A stretch of 63,214 nucleotides of DNA, counting the filler, from Hyphochytrium catenoides (taxonomy: Eukaryota > Protista > Hyphochytriomycota), in NCBI GenBank assembly GCA_900088475.1. It is 6 parts of 6 records of this genome, joined end to end, with 100 filler letters (N's around TTAATTAATTAA, not from the genome) between each part and the next. Parts side by side here need not be neighbours in the genome. Positions count along the whole stretch, not along the records: positions 56,421 to 63,214 come from FLMG01004019.1; 5 more parts are not named here. One strand, 5' to 3'. The notes under the pieces were generated by a model. It did not search any database, was not told the DNA's origin, and was given only the letters and a program-made list of their open reading frames with translations. Position numbers and translations under genes: made by a program. Of this stretch, positions 54,848-63,214 are shown piece by piece (within the stretch, counting starts at the first letter, position 1; each line of letters starts with the position of its first letter).

Positions 54848-57800
54848 CGTTGCGCGAGAGGAGAGACTTGCTCCGAGTCTCAATCTCCGTCTTTTCTCTC
54901 TCTCTCTCGCAAATGTTCATAGTGATAGTACCTCCCGCCTGAATGCATGGTCAAAGAGAAACGAAGCATCAACTCTGGAAGACTCTCGGCTCTCTGTGCC
55001 CCCGATCGATTGCTCTTCCCCGGGGACGATGTTCCTTCCCTCTGTGCTGATATTCTCTTGCCTCGCCGTCTGCCTGCTTCTCACTCTTGGGCGAAAAGGG
55101 CTTCGTTGACTTCTGTCAAACTTTTATTGATCCCTTGTCTTTCGTTCTCTGGGTCTTAGTAGCAGGTTCTCTTTCTCTCTCCCCTTTCTTTTTCTCTTTC
55201 TCTCCCTGCTCTCTCACTCTTCTTTCTCTCCCTTGCTCTCTCTCTCTCTCTCTCTCTGTGTCTCTGTCTCTCTCTCTCTCTCTGTCTCTGTCTCTCTCTC
55301 TCTCTCTGCGTGTGTGCCTTCTGATGCGGTCCTGCTGTTGAACTGTCAAAGATTCTGATGAAAGATCTTTCACGGACAAAAGAAAGGAGAGAAACAAAGC
55401 ATTACAGCAGAGTCTACACTTCCGTTACCAGCTAGACATGTCAACCGCTAAAACCCACTATAATTTCTCCTTGAACCATAAACAACTAAAATACGCCGTA
55501 ATACCCCTTGGCAATAAATAAAATAGGCGGTCATAGCAGATCCATATATGGACGATATGATTCACAATCAGGACGGCCCTGGATCGGCCGTCTGCTGTTT
55601 TATTAGGATAATTAGCACGACGAGCGCTGGGAAACGACCTTCCTCCCTCTTCTCCTTCTTCTGACAGCATCGCTGAGATATCATATAGTGCTGTTATATG
55701 TCTGTTGATGATGGAGACAGAGAGGAAGACGAAGAGTCACCAGCTAGGTCTTCCTCTTCTTCTGCTGTCGCTTCTTCTCCAAGAGGAATCGCTTCTTTCT
55801 CTCCAATTTGTTGTTCCTTTCGTCTTCTTCTCGTTCAGTGGTTGTCGTCATTATAAAAAGCAAGGTTGAGAAGCAGAAAGAAGTGACAGTTAGCCAAGAA
55901 CAGCGATGTTGAGGGAAGCACTGGGAACATTCGACTCTTCGACACTATAGTAAAGGAGAAGGGAAGACGCATCTCCTCTTCGTTCTTAGCCATCCTCGTA
56001 TAACGACTTGGCATGGCATTTTCCGTCGCAGGATCGTAGGTGAGGACTAGGCAAAACTATTGGCTTGAATGCCAAAACCGTCTTGTTGCGCCCTTCATGA
56101 TTGCTAGATGGAGAGACTATAGGAAATGGCAATCAATGTTACTCTGGAGTTAAAAATATGGGACTTTGGAATGGAAGCCTAGCAGGGAAGACGTAGACGC
56201 GGTTACGATTCTTCTATTCTTCCCCGTTCTTGGCTTTAGGTACATGGTTTCACGATGTTGCCGGCACTGTTCACATCCTTCGTAGTGATCCATTGGAGGG
56301 AGATGATGGGATTACTGCGGNNNNNNNNNNNNNNNNNNNNNNNNNNNNNNNNNNNNNNNNNNNNTTAATTAATTAANNNNNNNNNNNNNNNNNNNNNNNN
56401 NNNNNNNNNNNNNNNNNNNNGAACTGTGAGCCTTTTAGAGCTCTTGTCAGCTTCTGCTCTCAACAGTGGCTCATCTGGCCCATCCGCCAGGCCTTCTCAA
56501 GCAGCAGCATCTCTTCTCCTCTGGGATAGTAGAACATTCAAAGTCCGGGGGTGAAGCAGTACTTTTACATCCAAGGGCGCTTACACTTCTCAACCTCCAC
56601 TGGTCAAGGAGCTTCTAACGTCAGCATTACAAGAGCAAGCAAACGTGTTAGCTTGACGAGTGGGCACGGTGCATTGCTCCGTGCACGATACGTATACACG
56701 GGAACCGAGTGGCTCTTCTGCTTCAAGTATTCTCGCAGCTACAAACAAGCGAGAGCCTATCACTTTCTGGCATAAACGGCTCAATCAACTCACTCAAGCA
56801 CAGATTTATTAACCGACTAGCCCTGCAGGCTTCCGGTCTAGTCCTTTATAGATAGAGCTTCTCCGCAGCCCCCCTTAGTTGTGAGACCTGCGTTCTTGCT
56901 GAGCTATCGCGTAGCCTCCGGCCCTTTCACGCTCAGTCCCGCAAGGCAACAGACTGCCTGATCGTTTGGATGCTGACGTCGTTGGCACTATCAATACTAG
57001 CTACCACCTATTATGTGCATATTCTGAGAGTAGTAGGGGATGATCACACTCTGAGGTGCTTCGTGCACATCTCCTTCGCGGCAAAGGAGAAGCATTGCTA
57101 CTAATTTTTGAGACCTACATATCTTTATGGGGGAACAGATGCGGTCAGTTACGCAATCCGATCATCTTCTTTATTTGCAGCACGGAGTGAACTCGGATCC
57201 AGTCAAACGGGGTCAAGCGATGGCGGCATCGTGATGGTGCTTGGTGGTGGCGGCGATGAACGAGAGAAAATAATACCCGATGATGATAAACAAGAAGTTC
57301 CACGTTCTACTACGATAACGATCATTAGCAGCAAGAAGTAGTAGTGATGACGGCGATTCGGTAATTTTGTCTCTTGGAGAGAGAGAGAGAGAGAGAGAGA
57401 GAGGGAAGAAATTGGGAAGAAGTCGTGTGCTTTCAGATCTCGCTTTGTTCAGAGTTCTCGCTTTGTCATCAAAGCGCCTCTTCTTCACTGTTACACTTAC
57501 TGCCACCTTCTTCGTCCAACCATCCTCCTCCTACTTACTACCCGTCCTCCATCGATCATAATCAAAGCTCATTGATCAGCAGGAACTTACAACAGTTTCG
57601 AGTATCAATGGCAAGATCATGGCGAGTATTAACAAACTATACGTTCCATGGCTGGGAGATTAACTATGGCCACTTGATTTTGTTTAAAACTGAACACGAT
57701 CAAAACATGTCTAGAACGTGTTTCGACGCAAGGTTTGATCAAATCAGATCCATGATAAAAATGCTCTCAGTTCCAAACTCTACTTCACGAGAGGAAGGAA

Positions 57801-58404
57801 GAAACCAGTGTTTCGGGACTTCTGGTAACTAGGTAATAACCGCCAGGTAAAGCGTAATGGGAAGTGAGGAAACAGTAACTGTGTCTTGTCGATAATACTA
57901 GAAACAGTCACTAATGAGGGCAACAAAGACGACATGATAACTAGATGACGAACACTGAGGGTCCCATAAGCCCTGGACACTCGTTCTGACTATATCCGTA
58001 CACCACCTACCCTAAAAAAGGAGGTTCAACTCCTATACCTTATAACAGCTGGCACTCATGGCTATGGGCTGTATGACCTCGTGACCACAAGAAACACTCT
58101 GTGCCCGATGACGGGTCAGCACGTTAAAGAGATACGCTCCGATCGCCGGGGAGAGTTCGCTATTAGCAGTGCTGTTCTGTATGATGCGTACAATCCATAT
58201 GAAACGATAAAACGGACTGAGTAGTGATAAATGAGATATCAAAGAATGACTGATGAGGTTGGTCCTCCTCTGAAGATCTTTTCTCGTCAGCTTCCCTCAT
58301 CAATTCTCTCTGCTTGTCTCGGTGCGTTTACAAGAAAGAGTTTATGGAATTTTTCTCCTCATGACACCTCTCTTTCCCATAACACAGGTGTACCCGTAAT
58401 GTCG

Positions 58405-59285
58405 TCTAGAGCTGTGGACTGTTCAGCTTTCGACCCTTCACTATAGGGAGTTCGAGCTGCAGGGAGATGTTGGAGTCTGAGGGCGCAGCTTGTAGTAGGA
58501 AACAAAATCTCGCCAACCTCGCTGTTCCTCGTACATCAAGGAATCTGTGGAATGAAGTCCTAAAACCAAGTAATCTCTTACTAGCGGGTCTACAGCATGC
58601 GGAGATGTGTTGAATGTTCAGCTTTCGACCCTTCACCATAGGGAGTTCGAGCTGCGGGGAGGTGATGGAGTCTGAGGGCACAGCTATGTGGACTACAAGC
58701 TGGCAAGCTTAGCTGATGAATGTATGGGGTTTGGAGACAATTATATTATGTGTTCCTGCTCGGCTTATAAGCCTGAAAGGGTAGTCTCTTAGATTGTGGG
58801 ACCCTACTGGATTTAGGATCCTGAATACTACTGAGATGTATTCCTGCTAGAGAGTACCTGTTCTCTTTTAGTAATAACCCATAGATAACATTAGAGTCCA
58901 CTTCTTCCTTCATATCTCTGTATTTACTTGGAGTTTGGGACTGTAACATGGCCCAGTTGGTCTGGTACATCTTAGTTCTATGAAGTAAGACTCAGATAGT
59001 CCATACTTCAAAACCTCCCCGTAGTTCCAAATGTCTGTAGGTAAGAAAGGTAGAGGGGTTCAATTATTCTGAGAGAGAGGATGGTCATATGGTGGGTATG
59101 TTGGGCACTAGATATAGTATATATACTATATATATATCCAAGCTTCAGCTCTAAATTCCAGTAGAAACCGAGATATGAGCAAACGAAATTTCCCTGATTA
59201 TGTCCATGGCTTATGGTCAGTACCGCGGAATATCTTTAGGGCTGACTAGACGGGATATCTCTCTAACTGAATATCTTAGAGTTAT
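58405..59285. mobile_element. Rearranged fragments of the same LINE-like family as 44860-45510
   Basis: 58420-58490 and 58610-58690 are reverse complements of ~45050-45120; 58891-59010 matches 44861-44977; 59208-59285 matches 45316-45396. Confidence 0.75.
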
Positions 59286-59425
59286 TGATGAGTTCTAGCA
59301 GAGGTAGAGGTTGATGATGTCTGAAGCTCTATCTAGATGCACATATAACAGAGGGACTTGATGATGATTACCTGTCAATTGATTGCATGAATGTCTTGTT
59401 GAACTGTGATCAAAGCTGGAACCAG

Positions 59426-59472
59426 AAAGTGTACAGCGGACGACGCAGAGGGAAAAACCCCTTGGTATAAAA
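59426..59472 (+). promoter_or_regulatory. Putative upstream Pol III element plus TATA box in the LTR
   Basis: AAAGTGTACAGCGGACGACGCAGAGGG is invariant in all three LTRs at about -73 to -47, with a TATA at about -30 from the tRNA-like start. Confidence 0.5.
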
Positions 59473-59498
59473 GAACAAAAACGGAGTTTAGTTCAAGT

Positions 59499-59579
59499 GT
59501 ACGTTTGGTGTATGGTGCATACTGGTTAGGGTGTCGGCATCAAAGACAGAGGTCCTGGGTTCGAATCCCGGAGCATACA
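59499..59579 (+). ncRNA. tRNA-like RNA in the 5' LTR (81 nt)
   Basis: Acceptor GTACGTT/AGC(A)TAC, D arm GTGT-ATGGT-GCAT, T arm CTGGG-TTCGAAT-CCCGG, discriminator A, then a T6 run at 59584-59589. Confidence 0.8.
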
Positions 59580-59875
59580 AAACTTTTTTCCGGTATATTC
59601 AGACACCTCCAATATTAATTCAAAGTGCTGACCACCAGATCATAAAATCCAACATGGTGTACGCTCCGAGCGATTTAACTCGGGCAATATATTGAGCCAT
59701 TCGGTTCTGTGACCACGGATGACTATCACAGTTCCATTGGATCTAGAGCTTACAGAGTTCTCTAGATTCCGGGGGAGTGTTGAACTGTGATCGACGCTGG
59801 ATCCAGAAAGTGTACAGCGGACGACGCAGAGGGCAAAAACCCCTGGTATATAAACAAAAAGAAGATTAGTTAAGA

Positions 59876-59956
59876 GTACGTCTGGTGTATGGTGCATACT
59901 GGTTAGGGTGTCGGCATCAAAGACAGAGGTCCTGGTTTCGAATCCCGGAGCGTACA
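59876..59956 (+). ncRNA. tRNA-like RNA in the 3' LTR (81 nt)
   Basis: Same fold; ends ...CCCGGAGCGTACA, followed by a T4 run at 59961-59964. Confidence 0.8.
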
Positions 59957-62452
59957 ACACTTTTCTCCCGTATATCCAGACACCCCCCAGTATTGATTTA
60001 AGTGCTCACCATCCAACATATCTCTCTTGTGACCTCCTGATCAAAATCTGCGTCTCGTTCCATCCTCCTACTAACATAAGTCCATTTGCTCAAAGAAGAC
60101 ATTCATTCAGTGAATTGAATGGCAGATAATCATCATCAAAACCCTTTGTTATATGTTCATCTAGACAGACCTTCAGACCTCATCAATATCTACCTCTGCT
60201 AAAATTCATCAGGTTATGTTGGTTCCAGATTCGCTGTTGGTGACTGCTGCTTCTCTGCTCAACTGAGCGCCAGAGTGACGACCTTGTGTAATATGAGAGA
60301 CTGCTGCAGCTCTCGAGAGGGTGAGAGAAAGAAGGTGCTCCGTCTGTACCTTGGCTGGCCAGGCCTCAGTTCAGACAAGCACCGCTGTACCGCGGCAGCA
60401 GCTTCGTTTTGGGCGAAGCCGGTCCACTTCGTCCAGGTTATAGTCGGTAGCTAACATGACCTTGTCTCAAACCTGAACTGCAATACCATGCTGCGGTGCG
60501 GGTTGTGAAGCGCCTCCATGTAATCCTGGCTATCGTCTAGACGGTCCTGAGCGACGAGGAGTGATACTCTGATGTTCTCGAGCGTGTCTGCTACGCCCGG
60601 GGGCAATCCATCCTTCTCTACCTGTTGTGAGAGTTGGTTGTGACGGCAGCGAATGCCGCCATCGAGGTGGCACAGGTAAGTAACCGTAGGCCAAATAGAA
60701 GGGAGCGAAGCCAGCAGTGGCGGCGTGCTTCCTACTATTATACGCAAATTCTATGAGGTGAAGGTCGCGTTCCCAGTTCGTCCTCTAGTAATCCACATAG
60801 CATCTTGTAATCCACATAGCAACGTAAGGCAATCAGCATTGTCTTGTTCACGATCTCCGTCTGACCATCAGTCTGGGGCCTGTGTGACGTAGGCATGGCT
60901 AGAGAGGTGCCTAACCGTTTCTGAAGCTCGGTCCAGAATGCACTCGTGAACTTGCTGTTTCTGTCTGAGATGATGACTTGTGGGATACCATGGTGCTTCA
61001 CCACTTCCTTGAGGTAGAGTAGCGCCGCCTGCTCGGCTGTCATCCACTTCCTGCAAGGGATGAAGTGCGCGTGGTTACTAAGTTTGTCAACAGCGACCAT
61101 CACAGCGTCAAATTCTTCTGCCGTGCGGGCCAGGTCCACAACAATAAAAACGATCGACACCGTGTGCCACTTGCTCGCAGGGCTCTTGATGGGATGGGTG
61201 ACCCCGTGTCTTCGGTTATTGCTCTTGGTTCTCCCGCAGACGATGCAAGAGTTGATGAAGCAGCGCTTAATGTCTGTGTCCGTTCTGGGCCAGAAAAATA
61301 GGCGCATTAACTTCTCTTGTGTCGCGTTGATACCAGAGTGTGAGTCGTAGACGTTGTCGTGTGCCTCCACCAAGAGTTAAGTGACGAGCTCCTTGTCTGC
61401 CCGGGGAATGCAAATCCTGTCGGCTCCGCTTTTTTCTCGGAGGGCCAGAATATAAGCTCGTGTTGGGACATAACGCGAAGCGCTTGAGTCAGGCTGGAGT
61501 GACCTTAGTCTTCTTTCCAGGGTTCTTCAGCCCCATCCAAAGCTCCTTAAAGTACCGTCCTGCGCATAACCCTTCACTATCCGTTCGCATAGGTCGTCTG
61601 CCAACCCTCACACCCGCTTCCGAGTAGGTAACTCCTGCAGTGTCAAGCTCTAGCGCTTTTATATGGTCTGGTCTCGTGCTGAGGGCATCGGCTACCACGT
61701 TGAGTGCCTCCGGAATATACGTCAGGGTCGCATCGTAAGTGAGGAGAATGTCTAACCACTTCGCTTGGCGGCGATTGAGCGTCGACTGAGACAGGAGGAA
61801 TGTGAAAGAATGGTGATCCGTCCACATCTGGAAGTGCTTGTAAGAATAAAAGGTGGGACCATTCCTCCAGGCAATACGTGATCGCCAGCACTCCTTGTCA
61901 TACACTGAGTACTTTACCTCGTTTGGGTGGAGCTTCCCGGAAGCAAAGGCTATTTTTGGGGACCGTCTCCTAAAGGCCTGCATAATCACTCCTCAGCTGC
62001 AAAGTCGGAGGGGGAGGAGGCATCCGTGGCCACAACGAATTCGGCGTTGGGATCTGGAATGAGCAAGGCTGGGTGGAGCCCTCACCATAAATAGGAGTCT
62101 TTAGGGCTTTGAAGGCTGCATCAGCAGACGCCGTCCACCTGAAGCTTTTTCTGAACTCTTCCGTCGTCAGATCAATGAGAGGGAGTGCTATCTCTGCGTA
62201 GCGTGCGATAAACTTTCTATAAAAGCCTGTCAAGCCGAGGAACACTTCACCCCTTTCGAGTTGGGCGTTGGCCAGTCCGCCATCGCTTTGATCTTGGCCG
62301 GGTCAGACATCACCTTACCGTCCCCAATGACGAAGCCCAGGAACTTCAGCTCTGATTGAAAGAACCTGCACTTGTCGCGGCCCAGTAAAGCTTGTGGTCG
62401 CTCAATCATCTCCAGGTGGCGTTGATGCTCTTCCCGTGATCGAGAGAACACG

Positions 62453-62714
62453 TACACCATGTTAGATTTTATCATAGGATGGTGAGCACTTTGAGTTAAT
62501 ATTGGGGGGTGTCTGGATATACCGGAGAGAAGTTTTGTACGCTCCGGGATTTGAACCCAGGACCTCTGCCTTTGATGCCGACACCCTAACCAGTATGCAC
62601 CATACACCAAACGTACCCTTGACTAATCTCCGTTTCTATTTATATACCAGGGATTTTCCCCTCTGCGTCGTCCGCTGTACACTTTTTGGTTTCAGCGTCG
62701 ATCACAGTTCAGCA
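62453..62714 (-). mobile_element. Single LTR of the TRIM family (62460-62714) plus a 7-nt PBS stub, inserted in the Gypsy RT
   Basis: Minus strand reads TGCTGAACTGTGAT...AAATCTAACA-TGGTGTA, flanked by a perfect 5-bp duplication ACACG (62448-62452 and 62715-62719). Removing it restores YLDDITVFSRSREEH. Confidence 0.93.
62536..62616 (-). ncRNA. tRNA-like RNA in the third LTR (81 nt)
   Basis: GTACGTT...CTGGGTTCAAATCCCGGAGCGTACA, with a fully paired acceptor stem. Confidence 0.8.
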
Positions 62715-63028
62715 ACACGGTGATATCGTCCAGATAGATGAAGCAGATCTTGCCGATGTAATCTCCCAGAATATCATACATGATATGATTGAAAATGGCA
62801 GGAGCGGACTTCAGACCCATAGGCATGACGAGGCATTCGTGCGAGCCGAACAAAGGTGTGTTGAGCCCCTTTTTATGCACGTCGGACTCCGCCACTCACA
62901 TCTGATAGTATCCCTTGGTTAGATTAATGCTGCTGAAAACCTTGTTCCCATGCAGCTTGGAGCCAATGGCATCGAAAGATGGCAAGGCGAAGTTAAACTT
63001 CTGGCTGACTTGATTCAGCGCTTGGTAG

Positions 63029-63214
63029 TGTTGGATTTGTATGGGACGATTGGACAATGTCATTACCTGAGAGTGCTCTACCTATAAGCCCAACGGGGGG
63101 TCCCATAATCTAGAGCTATTCTGACTATGCCAACTATTCCTAATAAACCCTAAGATATGGAGTTATAGTGATATCCCTGTCTAGAATAGTCAGTCCTGGA
63201 GGTATCCTGGGGTA
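63029..63214 (+). mobile_element. LINE-like family fragment truncating the Gypsy RT
   Basis: Reverse complement of ~45325-45512. Confidence 0.75.

Follow-up and report, generated by a model that had tools for sequence, protein, structure and literature searches.

A miniature LTR retrotransposon of Hyphochytrium catenoides whose primer-binding site is complementary to the tRNA-like module of its own long terminal repeats

Which RNA primes reverse transcription of a long terminal repeat (LTR) retrotransposon whose primer-binding site (PBS) pairs with a transfer RNA (tRNA)-like sequence inside its own LTRs? To our knowledge, all known LTR retroelements use either a cellular tRNA or, in the Tf1 group, the folded-back 5′ end of their own mRNA. 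The question is raised by a complete miniature LTR element of Hyphochytrium catenoides (assembly GCA_900088475.1), found in a joined stretch of 63,214 nucleotides, hereafter the window. The element occupies positions 59397-60018 (622 bp) within the piece 56421-63214 (FLMG01004019.1), as delimited by direct reading, repeat search, alignment and blastn. A preliminary description had proposed that its LTRs and PBS form a private primer/PBS pair. Here, we examine the complementarity, the RNA that the PBS region images, and the candidate primers.

Each LTR of this family holds an 81-nt tRNA-like module (n = 3 copies, two in the complete element and one in a truncated copy nearby). The 14 nt of the PBS are the exact reverse complement of the last 11 nt of the module plus CCA in copies 2 and 3 (14/14), and match copy 1 at 13/14 positions, the same counts as in the preliminary description. 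The module is followed by AAA or ACA, so the CCA is untemplated, and the TGG that opens the PBS can pair only with such an added CCA. This facing of TGG and a non-encoded CCA, which had been pointed out before and holds, indicates that the partner of the PBS is probably a matured, CCA-tailed RNA bearing the acceptor strand of the module. The whole window was searched with the PBS as a 14-mer, allowing up to 3 mismatches. The matches were the PBS itself and the three module 3′ ends only, and their mismatches lay where the CCA is not encoded and, in copy 1, at one G>A as well. By chance 0.39 matches are expected in the window, and four matches were reached in 0/100 shuffles. The 14-bp duplex between module plus CCA and PBS has a computed energy of -27 kcal/mol. 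The complementarity between LTR module and PBS is confirmed at the sequence level. A chance resemblance, or an artefact of assembly or annotation, could draw on the small sample. However, the matches fall exactly at the three module 3′ ends, an 11-nt match at a fixed position has a probability of about 2e-7, and two independent insertions with target-site duplications (TSDs) are present; this explanation is effectively refuted. A second TGGTGTACGG lies at 57995-58004 on the minus strand. It has no LTR-like ..CA end before it and no repeat around it. As a PBS it was rejected and taken as a chance occurrence, since it does not stand beside an LTR end; about 0.05 occurrences are expected for the 9-mer.

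By structure the element is a new family of Helenus/TRIMp3 (Kojima 2024, PMC10886601): tRNA-derived sequence with box A and box B lies in both LTRs, although the Rfam tRNA model is not reached. In that survey, complementarity between LTR tRNA and PBS was sought in all Helenus families and none was found (PMC10886601, section 3.6), and the small-RNA genes of the LTRs were held to play no part in priming. The preliminary description was right that no such match had been reported. The present family is an exception to the statement of no complementarity, and a counter-example, at the level of sequence, to the no-priming conclusion. In the Helenus families described to date the PBS is unrelated to the tRNA-like sequence of the LTR (PMC10886601), whereas here 14/14 positions pair; the lack of relation is not a defining criterion of Helenus.

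The anatomy had been described as that of a TRIM (a miniature retrotransposon with terminal repeats) with PBS, polypurine tract (PPT), TSDs and one tRNA-like gene per LTR. Direct reading, repeat search, alignment and ARAGORN bear this out, and the parts of the element are as follows.

59392-59396, no strand: left TSD, TGTCT, a 4/5 match to TATCT at 60019-60023
59397-59654, + strand: 5′ LTR (LTR1), 258 bp, TGTTG...CAACA (direct reading, repeat search, alignment, blastn)
59655-59668, + strand: PBS, TGGTGTACGCTCCG, adjoining LTR1
59669-59770, + strand: remainder of the non-coding internal region (direct reading; crossed by an open reading frame without homologues)
59771-59777, + strand: PPT, GGGGGAG, abutting the 3′ LTR; the motif also occurs in fungal Helenus consensus sequences
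59778-60018, + strand: 3′ LTR (LTR2), 241 bp, with a deletion of about 13 nt near its 3′ end (repeat search, alignment, blastn)
60019-60023, no strand: right TSD, TATCT (direct reading)

The two LTRs are 88.3% identical over 239 nt, and both start with TGTTG and end with AACA. Compared with 59620-59654 and with copy 3, the end of the 3′ LTR (59995-60018) is short of about 13 nt (TATGATAAAATC-like) before the terminal AACA. The whole internal region spans 59655-59777 (123 nt). With two LTRs, a short internal region, a length below about 1 kb and no coding capacity, together with PBS, PPT, TG..CA LTR ends and TSDs (4/5 in the full copy, 5/5 in copy 3), the element has the features of a TRIM. The family makes 5-bp target duplications, as do fungal and plant Helenus (PMC10886601).

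The three modules, and two flanking signals of the first, lie as follows.

59499-59579, + strand: tRNA-like module, copy 1 (ARAGORN, folding, complementarity search)
59876-59956, + strand: tRNA-like module, copy 2 (alignment and complementarity search; no ARAGORN call)
62536-62616, - strand: tRNA-like module, copy 3, the best preserved (ARAGORN, folding, Rfam)
59466-59473, + strand: TATA-like box about 30 nt upstream of the module, TATAAAAG in copy 1 and TATATAAA in copies 2 and 3
59584-59589, + strand: T6 run of copy 1, resembling an RNA polymerase III (Pol III) terminator, 5 nt past the module

In copy 1, box A lies at 59506-59515, box B at 59558-59568, and the acceptor 3′ strand with the discriminator at 59572-59579, where the G>A at 59575 disrupts one pair with the PBS. 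Copy 2 has a mutated box B (GTTTCGAATCC) and an intact 3′ end, and copy 3 retains a 7-bp acceptor stem and a 5-bp T arm. In copies 1 and 3, but not in copy 2, ARAGORN called a tRNA-like gene and assigned it a 4-nt "anticodon" (aggg). It drew both with a 7-bp acceptor stem, a 5-bp T arm, a 3-bp D stem, a long variable arm, a weak 4-bp anticodon stem with two G-U pairs, an 8-nt loop (TTAGGGTG) and a discriminator A. For copy 3, RNAfold predicted the acceptor stem, the T arm and one central hairpin. The Rfam tRNA model (RF00005) gave no match at E<=1 in the whole piece, nor at E<=10 in a 151-nt stretch; the T arm alone scored, against mascRNA and tmRNA. The module does not show the canonical cloverleaf, 7-nt anticodon loop and covariance-model score of a functional tRNA. 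Because the Rfam tRNA model is not reached, we call the module tRNA-like and not a tRNA: its acceptor stem and T arm are intact and its lower half is degenerate. The ARAGORN label, tRNA-Pro-like with anticodon AGG, was rejected, as the long variable arm and A73 fit a class II tRNA-Leu better. A long variable arm with discriminator A is the tRNA-Leu pattern in eukaryotes. In the Leu-like reading the loop TTAGGGT would lie close to that of tRNA-Leu-AAG; both the Pro-like and the Leu-like readings are tentative.

The alignment gives box A as TGGTGTATGG and the perfect box B as GGTTCGAATCC. The T-run, 4-5 nt past the discriminator, is T6 in copy 1 and T4 in copy 2, and is lost in copy 3. A TATA-like box, box A, box B, a short trailer and a T-run are, as far as sequence can tell, the predicted layout of a complete tRNA-type Pol III unit. 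Identity among the three copies is 95-96% in the module versus 84-87% in the remaining LTR, and a single insertion shows the gap between its own two LTRs (Fisher p=0.005). The higher conservation of the module could stem from selection, from gene conversion or from a mutation rate that is lower locally. The sole family-wide change in the acceptor stem, C6>U, is on the 5′ strand and leaves a G-U pair, with the 3′ strand intact. The divergence among the three copies is star-like.

These properties bear on the proposal that the LTR-borne tRNA-like gene, in the element's own LTRs or in sibling solo LTRs, is the true minus-strand primer. Each LTR would then be a working Pol III gene, with transcripts ending at the T-run, trimmed by RNase Z and given a CCA. 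The product would anneal to the PBS of the full-length RNA and be extended by the reverse transcriptase (RT) of a partner element; it would act in trans or be the genomic RNA's own 3′ end after processing. One Pol III unit would yield two products, terminated transcripts as primer and read-through transcripts as template. We give this proposal appreciable weight, well below an even chance. The exact 11-nt match and the TGG facing a non-encoded CCA argue for it, the more so as this exactness occurs in a module otherwise degenerate beyond the reach of the tRNA model. The proposal is also consistent with the completeness of the Pol III unit (TATA at about -30, box A, perfect box B, 4-5-nt trailer and T-run), and with an intact acceptor/T-arm minihelix beside degenerate D and anticodon arms. 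RNase P, RNase Z and the CCA-adding enzyme all act on such a minihelix. A terminator right behind the module is more in keeping with a small RNA as product than with a role as promoter alone. The conservation of the module points the same way, as does the acceptor-stem change, which leaves the doubly constrained 3′ strand unaltered. On the other hand, acceptor stems and T-runs are kept in other Helenus families without a PBS match and hence are not specific evidence. Moreover, the proposal has no known precedent; expression, CCA tailing and priming are hypothetical steps in it, and the sample comprises one full-length copy and three modules.

A further point concerns the sequence downstream of the 14-nt PBS, where a hairpin begins within the PBS.

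59666-59685, + strand: PBS extension, with the hairpin CCGAG-CGATTTAA-CTCGG (59666-59683, 8-nt loop), an antisense image of a T arm unlike that of the LTR

The other strand of the PBS region reads T stem, loop, T stem, acceptor 3′ strand, A and CCA. In the PBS region a tRNA-type RNA is thus imaged over its last ~32 nt, to ~18 nt beyond the 14-nt PBS. A perfect 5-bp hairpin occupies the very position that a T stem next to the acceptor strand has to take (p~0.002). The T arm of the LTR is CTGGG / TTCGAAT / CCCGG, whereas the image in the PBS region has CCGAG/CTCGG. The two differ at positions 50, 52 and 62, with 52-62 a compensatory change from G-C to A-T. Nucleotides 15-32 are nonetheless more complementary to the LTR T arm than shuffled sequences are (p 0.02-0.07), which indicates that the two T arms are related. 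The signal beyond the PBS is confined to these nucleotides: a long duplex between module and PBS region (-57 kcal/mol) was not above shuffles in which all 52 downstream nt were permuted (73/500).

The module plus CCA matches the PBS region over 14 contiguous nt and at 15/18 of the first 18. An RNA sharing the acceptor stem but carrying the PBS-type T arm would fit better. All three LTR copies carry the LTR-type T arm, and no sibling module with the PBS-type T arm is found among them. This image of another T arm at nt 15-32 weakens the idea of self-priming a little, and the better-fitting RNA comes close to what the preliminary description had named as grounds for abandoning its private primer, namely a host tRNA that is the better primer. 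Of that claim the complementarity stands, and the LTR transcript is a candidate partner. Two considerations soften the point. T stems of the type ..GAG/CTC.. occur in other fungal Helenus modules, which makes it conceivable that a sibling module carries the PBS-type T arm. In addition, going by the title of a 1994 paper by Lauermann and Boeke, the Ty1 PBS is reportedly not copied from the primer; if the rule stated in that title holds here, the mismatches at PBS nt 15-18 would not be fatal to priming by the LTR RNA.

We consider it the likeliest reading, at a little short of an even chance, that the minus-strand primer is a cellular tRNA of the module's lineage and that LTR and PBS match by common descent. 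The element is a non-coding miniature LTR retrotransposon of Helenus type (TRIMp3) with a complete Pol III-type tRNA-like unit per LTR; an autonomous LTR element generating 5-bp duplications would mobilise it in trans. Its primer would be a free-standing, Leu-like class II tRNA with A73, and the LTR module would descend from this primer tRNA too. A shared ancestor tRNA would give the perfect 11+3 nt match between module and PBS through common descent. The RNA imaged by the PBS would belong to the same lineage as the module, with an identical acceptor 3′ strand and a different, internally compensated T arm. The cellular primer gene, outside the LTRs, would end in ...GGAGCGTACA; a canonical primer tRNA would have the 3′ end ...CUCGGAGCGUACA, and one of Leu type would end in ...CTCGGAGCGTACA. 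We infer this source gene, its transcription and processing, and the Leu-like origin of the primer. The chief role of the LTR module would be to signal the start of Pol III (or Pol II TATA) transcription and to form the R region. If expressed and CCA-tailed, its RNA could still anneal over 14 bp and act as an extra primer.

Three observations favour a cellular tRNA as primer: the T-arm image in the PBS is different but compensated, all three LTR copies share the LTR-type T arm, and host tRNA 3′ ends, that of tRNA-Leu among them, are the usual primers in Helenus and Ajax (PMC10886601). In Ty1 and Ty3, the element RNA is known to extend its pairing into the T arm of the primer (PMC5371799). Several points weigh against this reading. 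The host tRNA with such a 3′ end is putative, and its T loop as read from the PBS image (8 nt, no C56) is non-canonical for a real tRNA. The module is too degenerate for the Rfam tRNA model, yet its 3′ strand is identical to that of the presumed primer at 11/11 positions, which a match under selection explains more easily. Finally, no such match was found in ~200 Helenus families, even where module and PBS indicate the same tRNA species (Kojima 2024, PMC10886601). A match by descent alone is evidently rare, a point that also speaks for an LTR-borne primer.

The complementarity could also act within the element RNA. The module, as R region at either end of the genomic RNA, would pair with the PBS region in RNA cyclisation or strand-transfer guidance, like the Ty1 CYC5/CYC3 or U5-PBS stems, and the primer would be an unrelated RNA. 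The 11-nt complementarity between R and PBS is encoded and continues with bulges into the T arm, and long-range 5′-3′ pairing is known in Ty1 and Ty3 (PMC5371799). However, such a structure leaves unexplained the TGG, which pairs only with the non-encoded CCA. Folding of 59499-59700 predicts a PBS unpaired with the module 3′ strand (expected 0.58 bp), and no other plausible PBS lies beside the LTR. We regard this role as improbable. The probability that these readings leave over is assigned to explanations beyond those named here.

What is at stake differs between a cellular and an LTR-borne primer. Priming by a cellular tRNA would mean that an LTR can acquire its module from the very tRNA species that serves as primer, which bears on the origin of TRIMp3. 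If the LTR RNA primes, the LTR-borne Pol III genes would have a function, priming would have a third mode, and a non-autonomous element would be freed from its partner's choice of primer. With a private primer, the element would become the first known case of an LTR retroelement encoding a tRNA-type primer of its own, and its primer supply would grow with copy number.

Within Helenus, the closest likenesses were noted by eye only. The LTR ends (TGTTGAA..TGTGATC.AC and ..TCTAACA) resemble those of the Pucciniales families LTR-2_PSt, Helenus-3_PGr and Helenus-5_UTr, as does the PPT GGGGG(A/T)G (GGGGGAG/GGGGGTG); T-runs after the module are likewise seen in fungal Helenus in Data S1 of Kojima. 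The resemblance to Pucciniales and the Leu-like assignment are leads. A motif search for six family-specific motifs found none of them in Data S1. The PBSs of fungal Helenus correspond to the anticodon loop of initiator Met (iMet), Tyr, Ile, Asp or Asn tRNA, or to the iMet 3′ end, and the present type of PBS is new among them. In the literature we found no later TRIMp3 paper, none with the present PBS or primer sequence, and none on an "own primer". An open reading frame (ORF) spanning the internal region has no homologues among 5.8 billion proteins. The LTR ORF, compared with 1.84 billion protein representatives, gave a single weak match, P0030 (E=6e-4). It was rejected as a relative, as it belongs to a 180-bp satellite array in an unrelated ENA contig (L001:9550-12000) without tRNA-like genes. 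Invariant 22- and 25-mers of the LTR had no match in two metagenome DNA scans, and scans of prokaryote genomes and viral contigs returned no relatives of the element.

Other elements share single traits with this family. As the preliminary description stated correctly, Helenus and Cassandra carry sequences of small RNAs inside their LTRs. Cassandra and Ajax resemble the present element in having, inside TRIM LTRs, a small-RNA gene with an internal Pol III promoter that may be transcribed independently. They differ in that their module is derived from 5S rRNA and their PBS matches host tRNA-iMet or tRNA-Leu, unrelated to the module. No Rfam match to 5S rRNA was found in the piece, and none to the hammerhead ribozyme that marks retrozymes at E<=1. 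If the LTR RNA primes, the element would resemble Tf1/Tf2 in taking its primer from its own sequence and not from an unrelated host tRNA. In Tf1, however, the first 11 nt of the element's own mRNA are folded back and cut by RNase H, without CCA, whereas here the complementary part is the 3′ end of the module and CCA addition is required. The first ~11 nt of the present transcript, counted from an inferred start site, are not complementary to the PBS. The 5′ strand of the module, GTACGTT, runs in the same sense as the PBS; pairing between them is limited to 5 bp, formed by the GUAC palindrome. Like tRNA-derived short interspersed elements (SINEs) and mascRNA, the module has a degenerate tRNA-like fold with box A, box B and a retained acceptor/T-arm minihelix. 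mascRNA undergoes cleavage by RNase P and RNase Z and is given a CCA. Unlike the module, these sequences lie outside LTRs and have no cognate PBS. Mitochondrial retroplasmids of the Mauriceville type have an RNA whose own tRNA-like 3′ structure terminates in CCA and serves in initiating reverse transcription. They differ in that reverse transcription starts at the CCA of the template itself, and in being organellar and lacking LTRs, PBS and PPT.

The third module belongs to a truncated copy on the minus strand, with the following parts.

62460-62714, - strand: LTR of truncated copy 3, in the YLDD box of a degraded Ty3/Gypsy RT gene (alignment, blastn)
62453-62459, - strand: PBS remnant TGGTGTA of copy 3 (direct reading)

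The copy is flanked by a perfect 5-bp duplication, CGTGT (left 62719-62715, right 62452-62448, minus strand), and between the repeats (62448-62719) only the LTR and TGGTGTA of the PBS remain. It is the truncated remnant of a full-length element and no mere solo LTR. A deletion between two ACG triplets, one formed by PBS nt 7-9 and the other by the LTR end plus the TSD, apparently removed the internal region and the 3′ LTR. Integration of plus-strand strong-stop DNA without a TSD was rejected as its origin, since the junctions carry the perfect CGTGT duplication. The insertion point lies inside the RT codons I-T-V|F-S-R.

The interrupted gene is part of a degraded Ty3/Gypsy pol at 60450-63214 on the minus strand, with the Pfam domains RVT_1, RT_RNaseH, Integrase_H2C2 and rve in that order, an in-frame TGA at 62898-62896 and frame breaks. 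A protein search with its RNase H ORF returned no match. The best database relatives of its integrase ORF are fragments of 35-53% identity from plant Ty3/Gypsy elements and unnamed JGI proteins.

The complete element is flanked on both sides by inverted repeat arms of 108 nt, 82% complementary, at 59286-59393 and 60104-60211. The left arm stops exactly at the insertion site, indicating that the TRIM inserted at the border of a larger repeat of palindromic or foldback type. Elsewhere in the piece, direct repeats of 83 nt each (58408-58490 and 58603-58685) are 89% identical, lie 195 nt apart and contain a GAGTTCGAGC motif loosely like box B, and a (GA)n microsatellite occupies 57376-57405.

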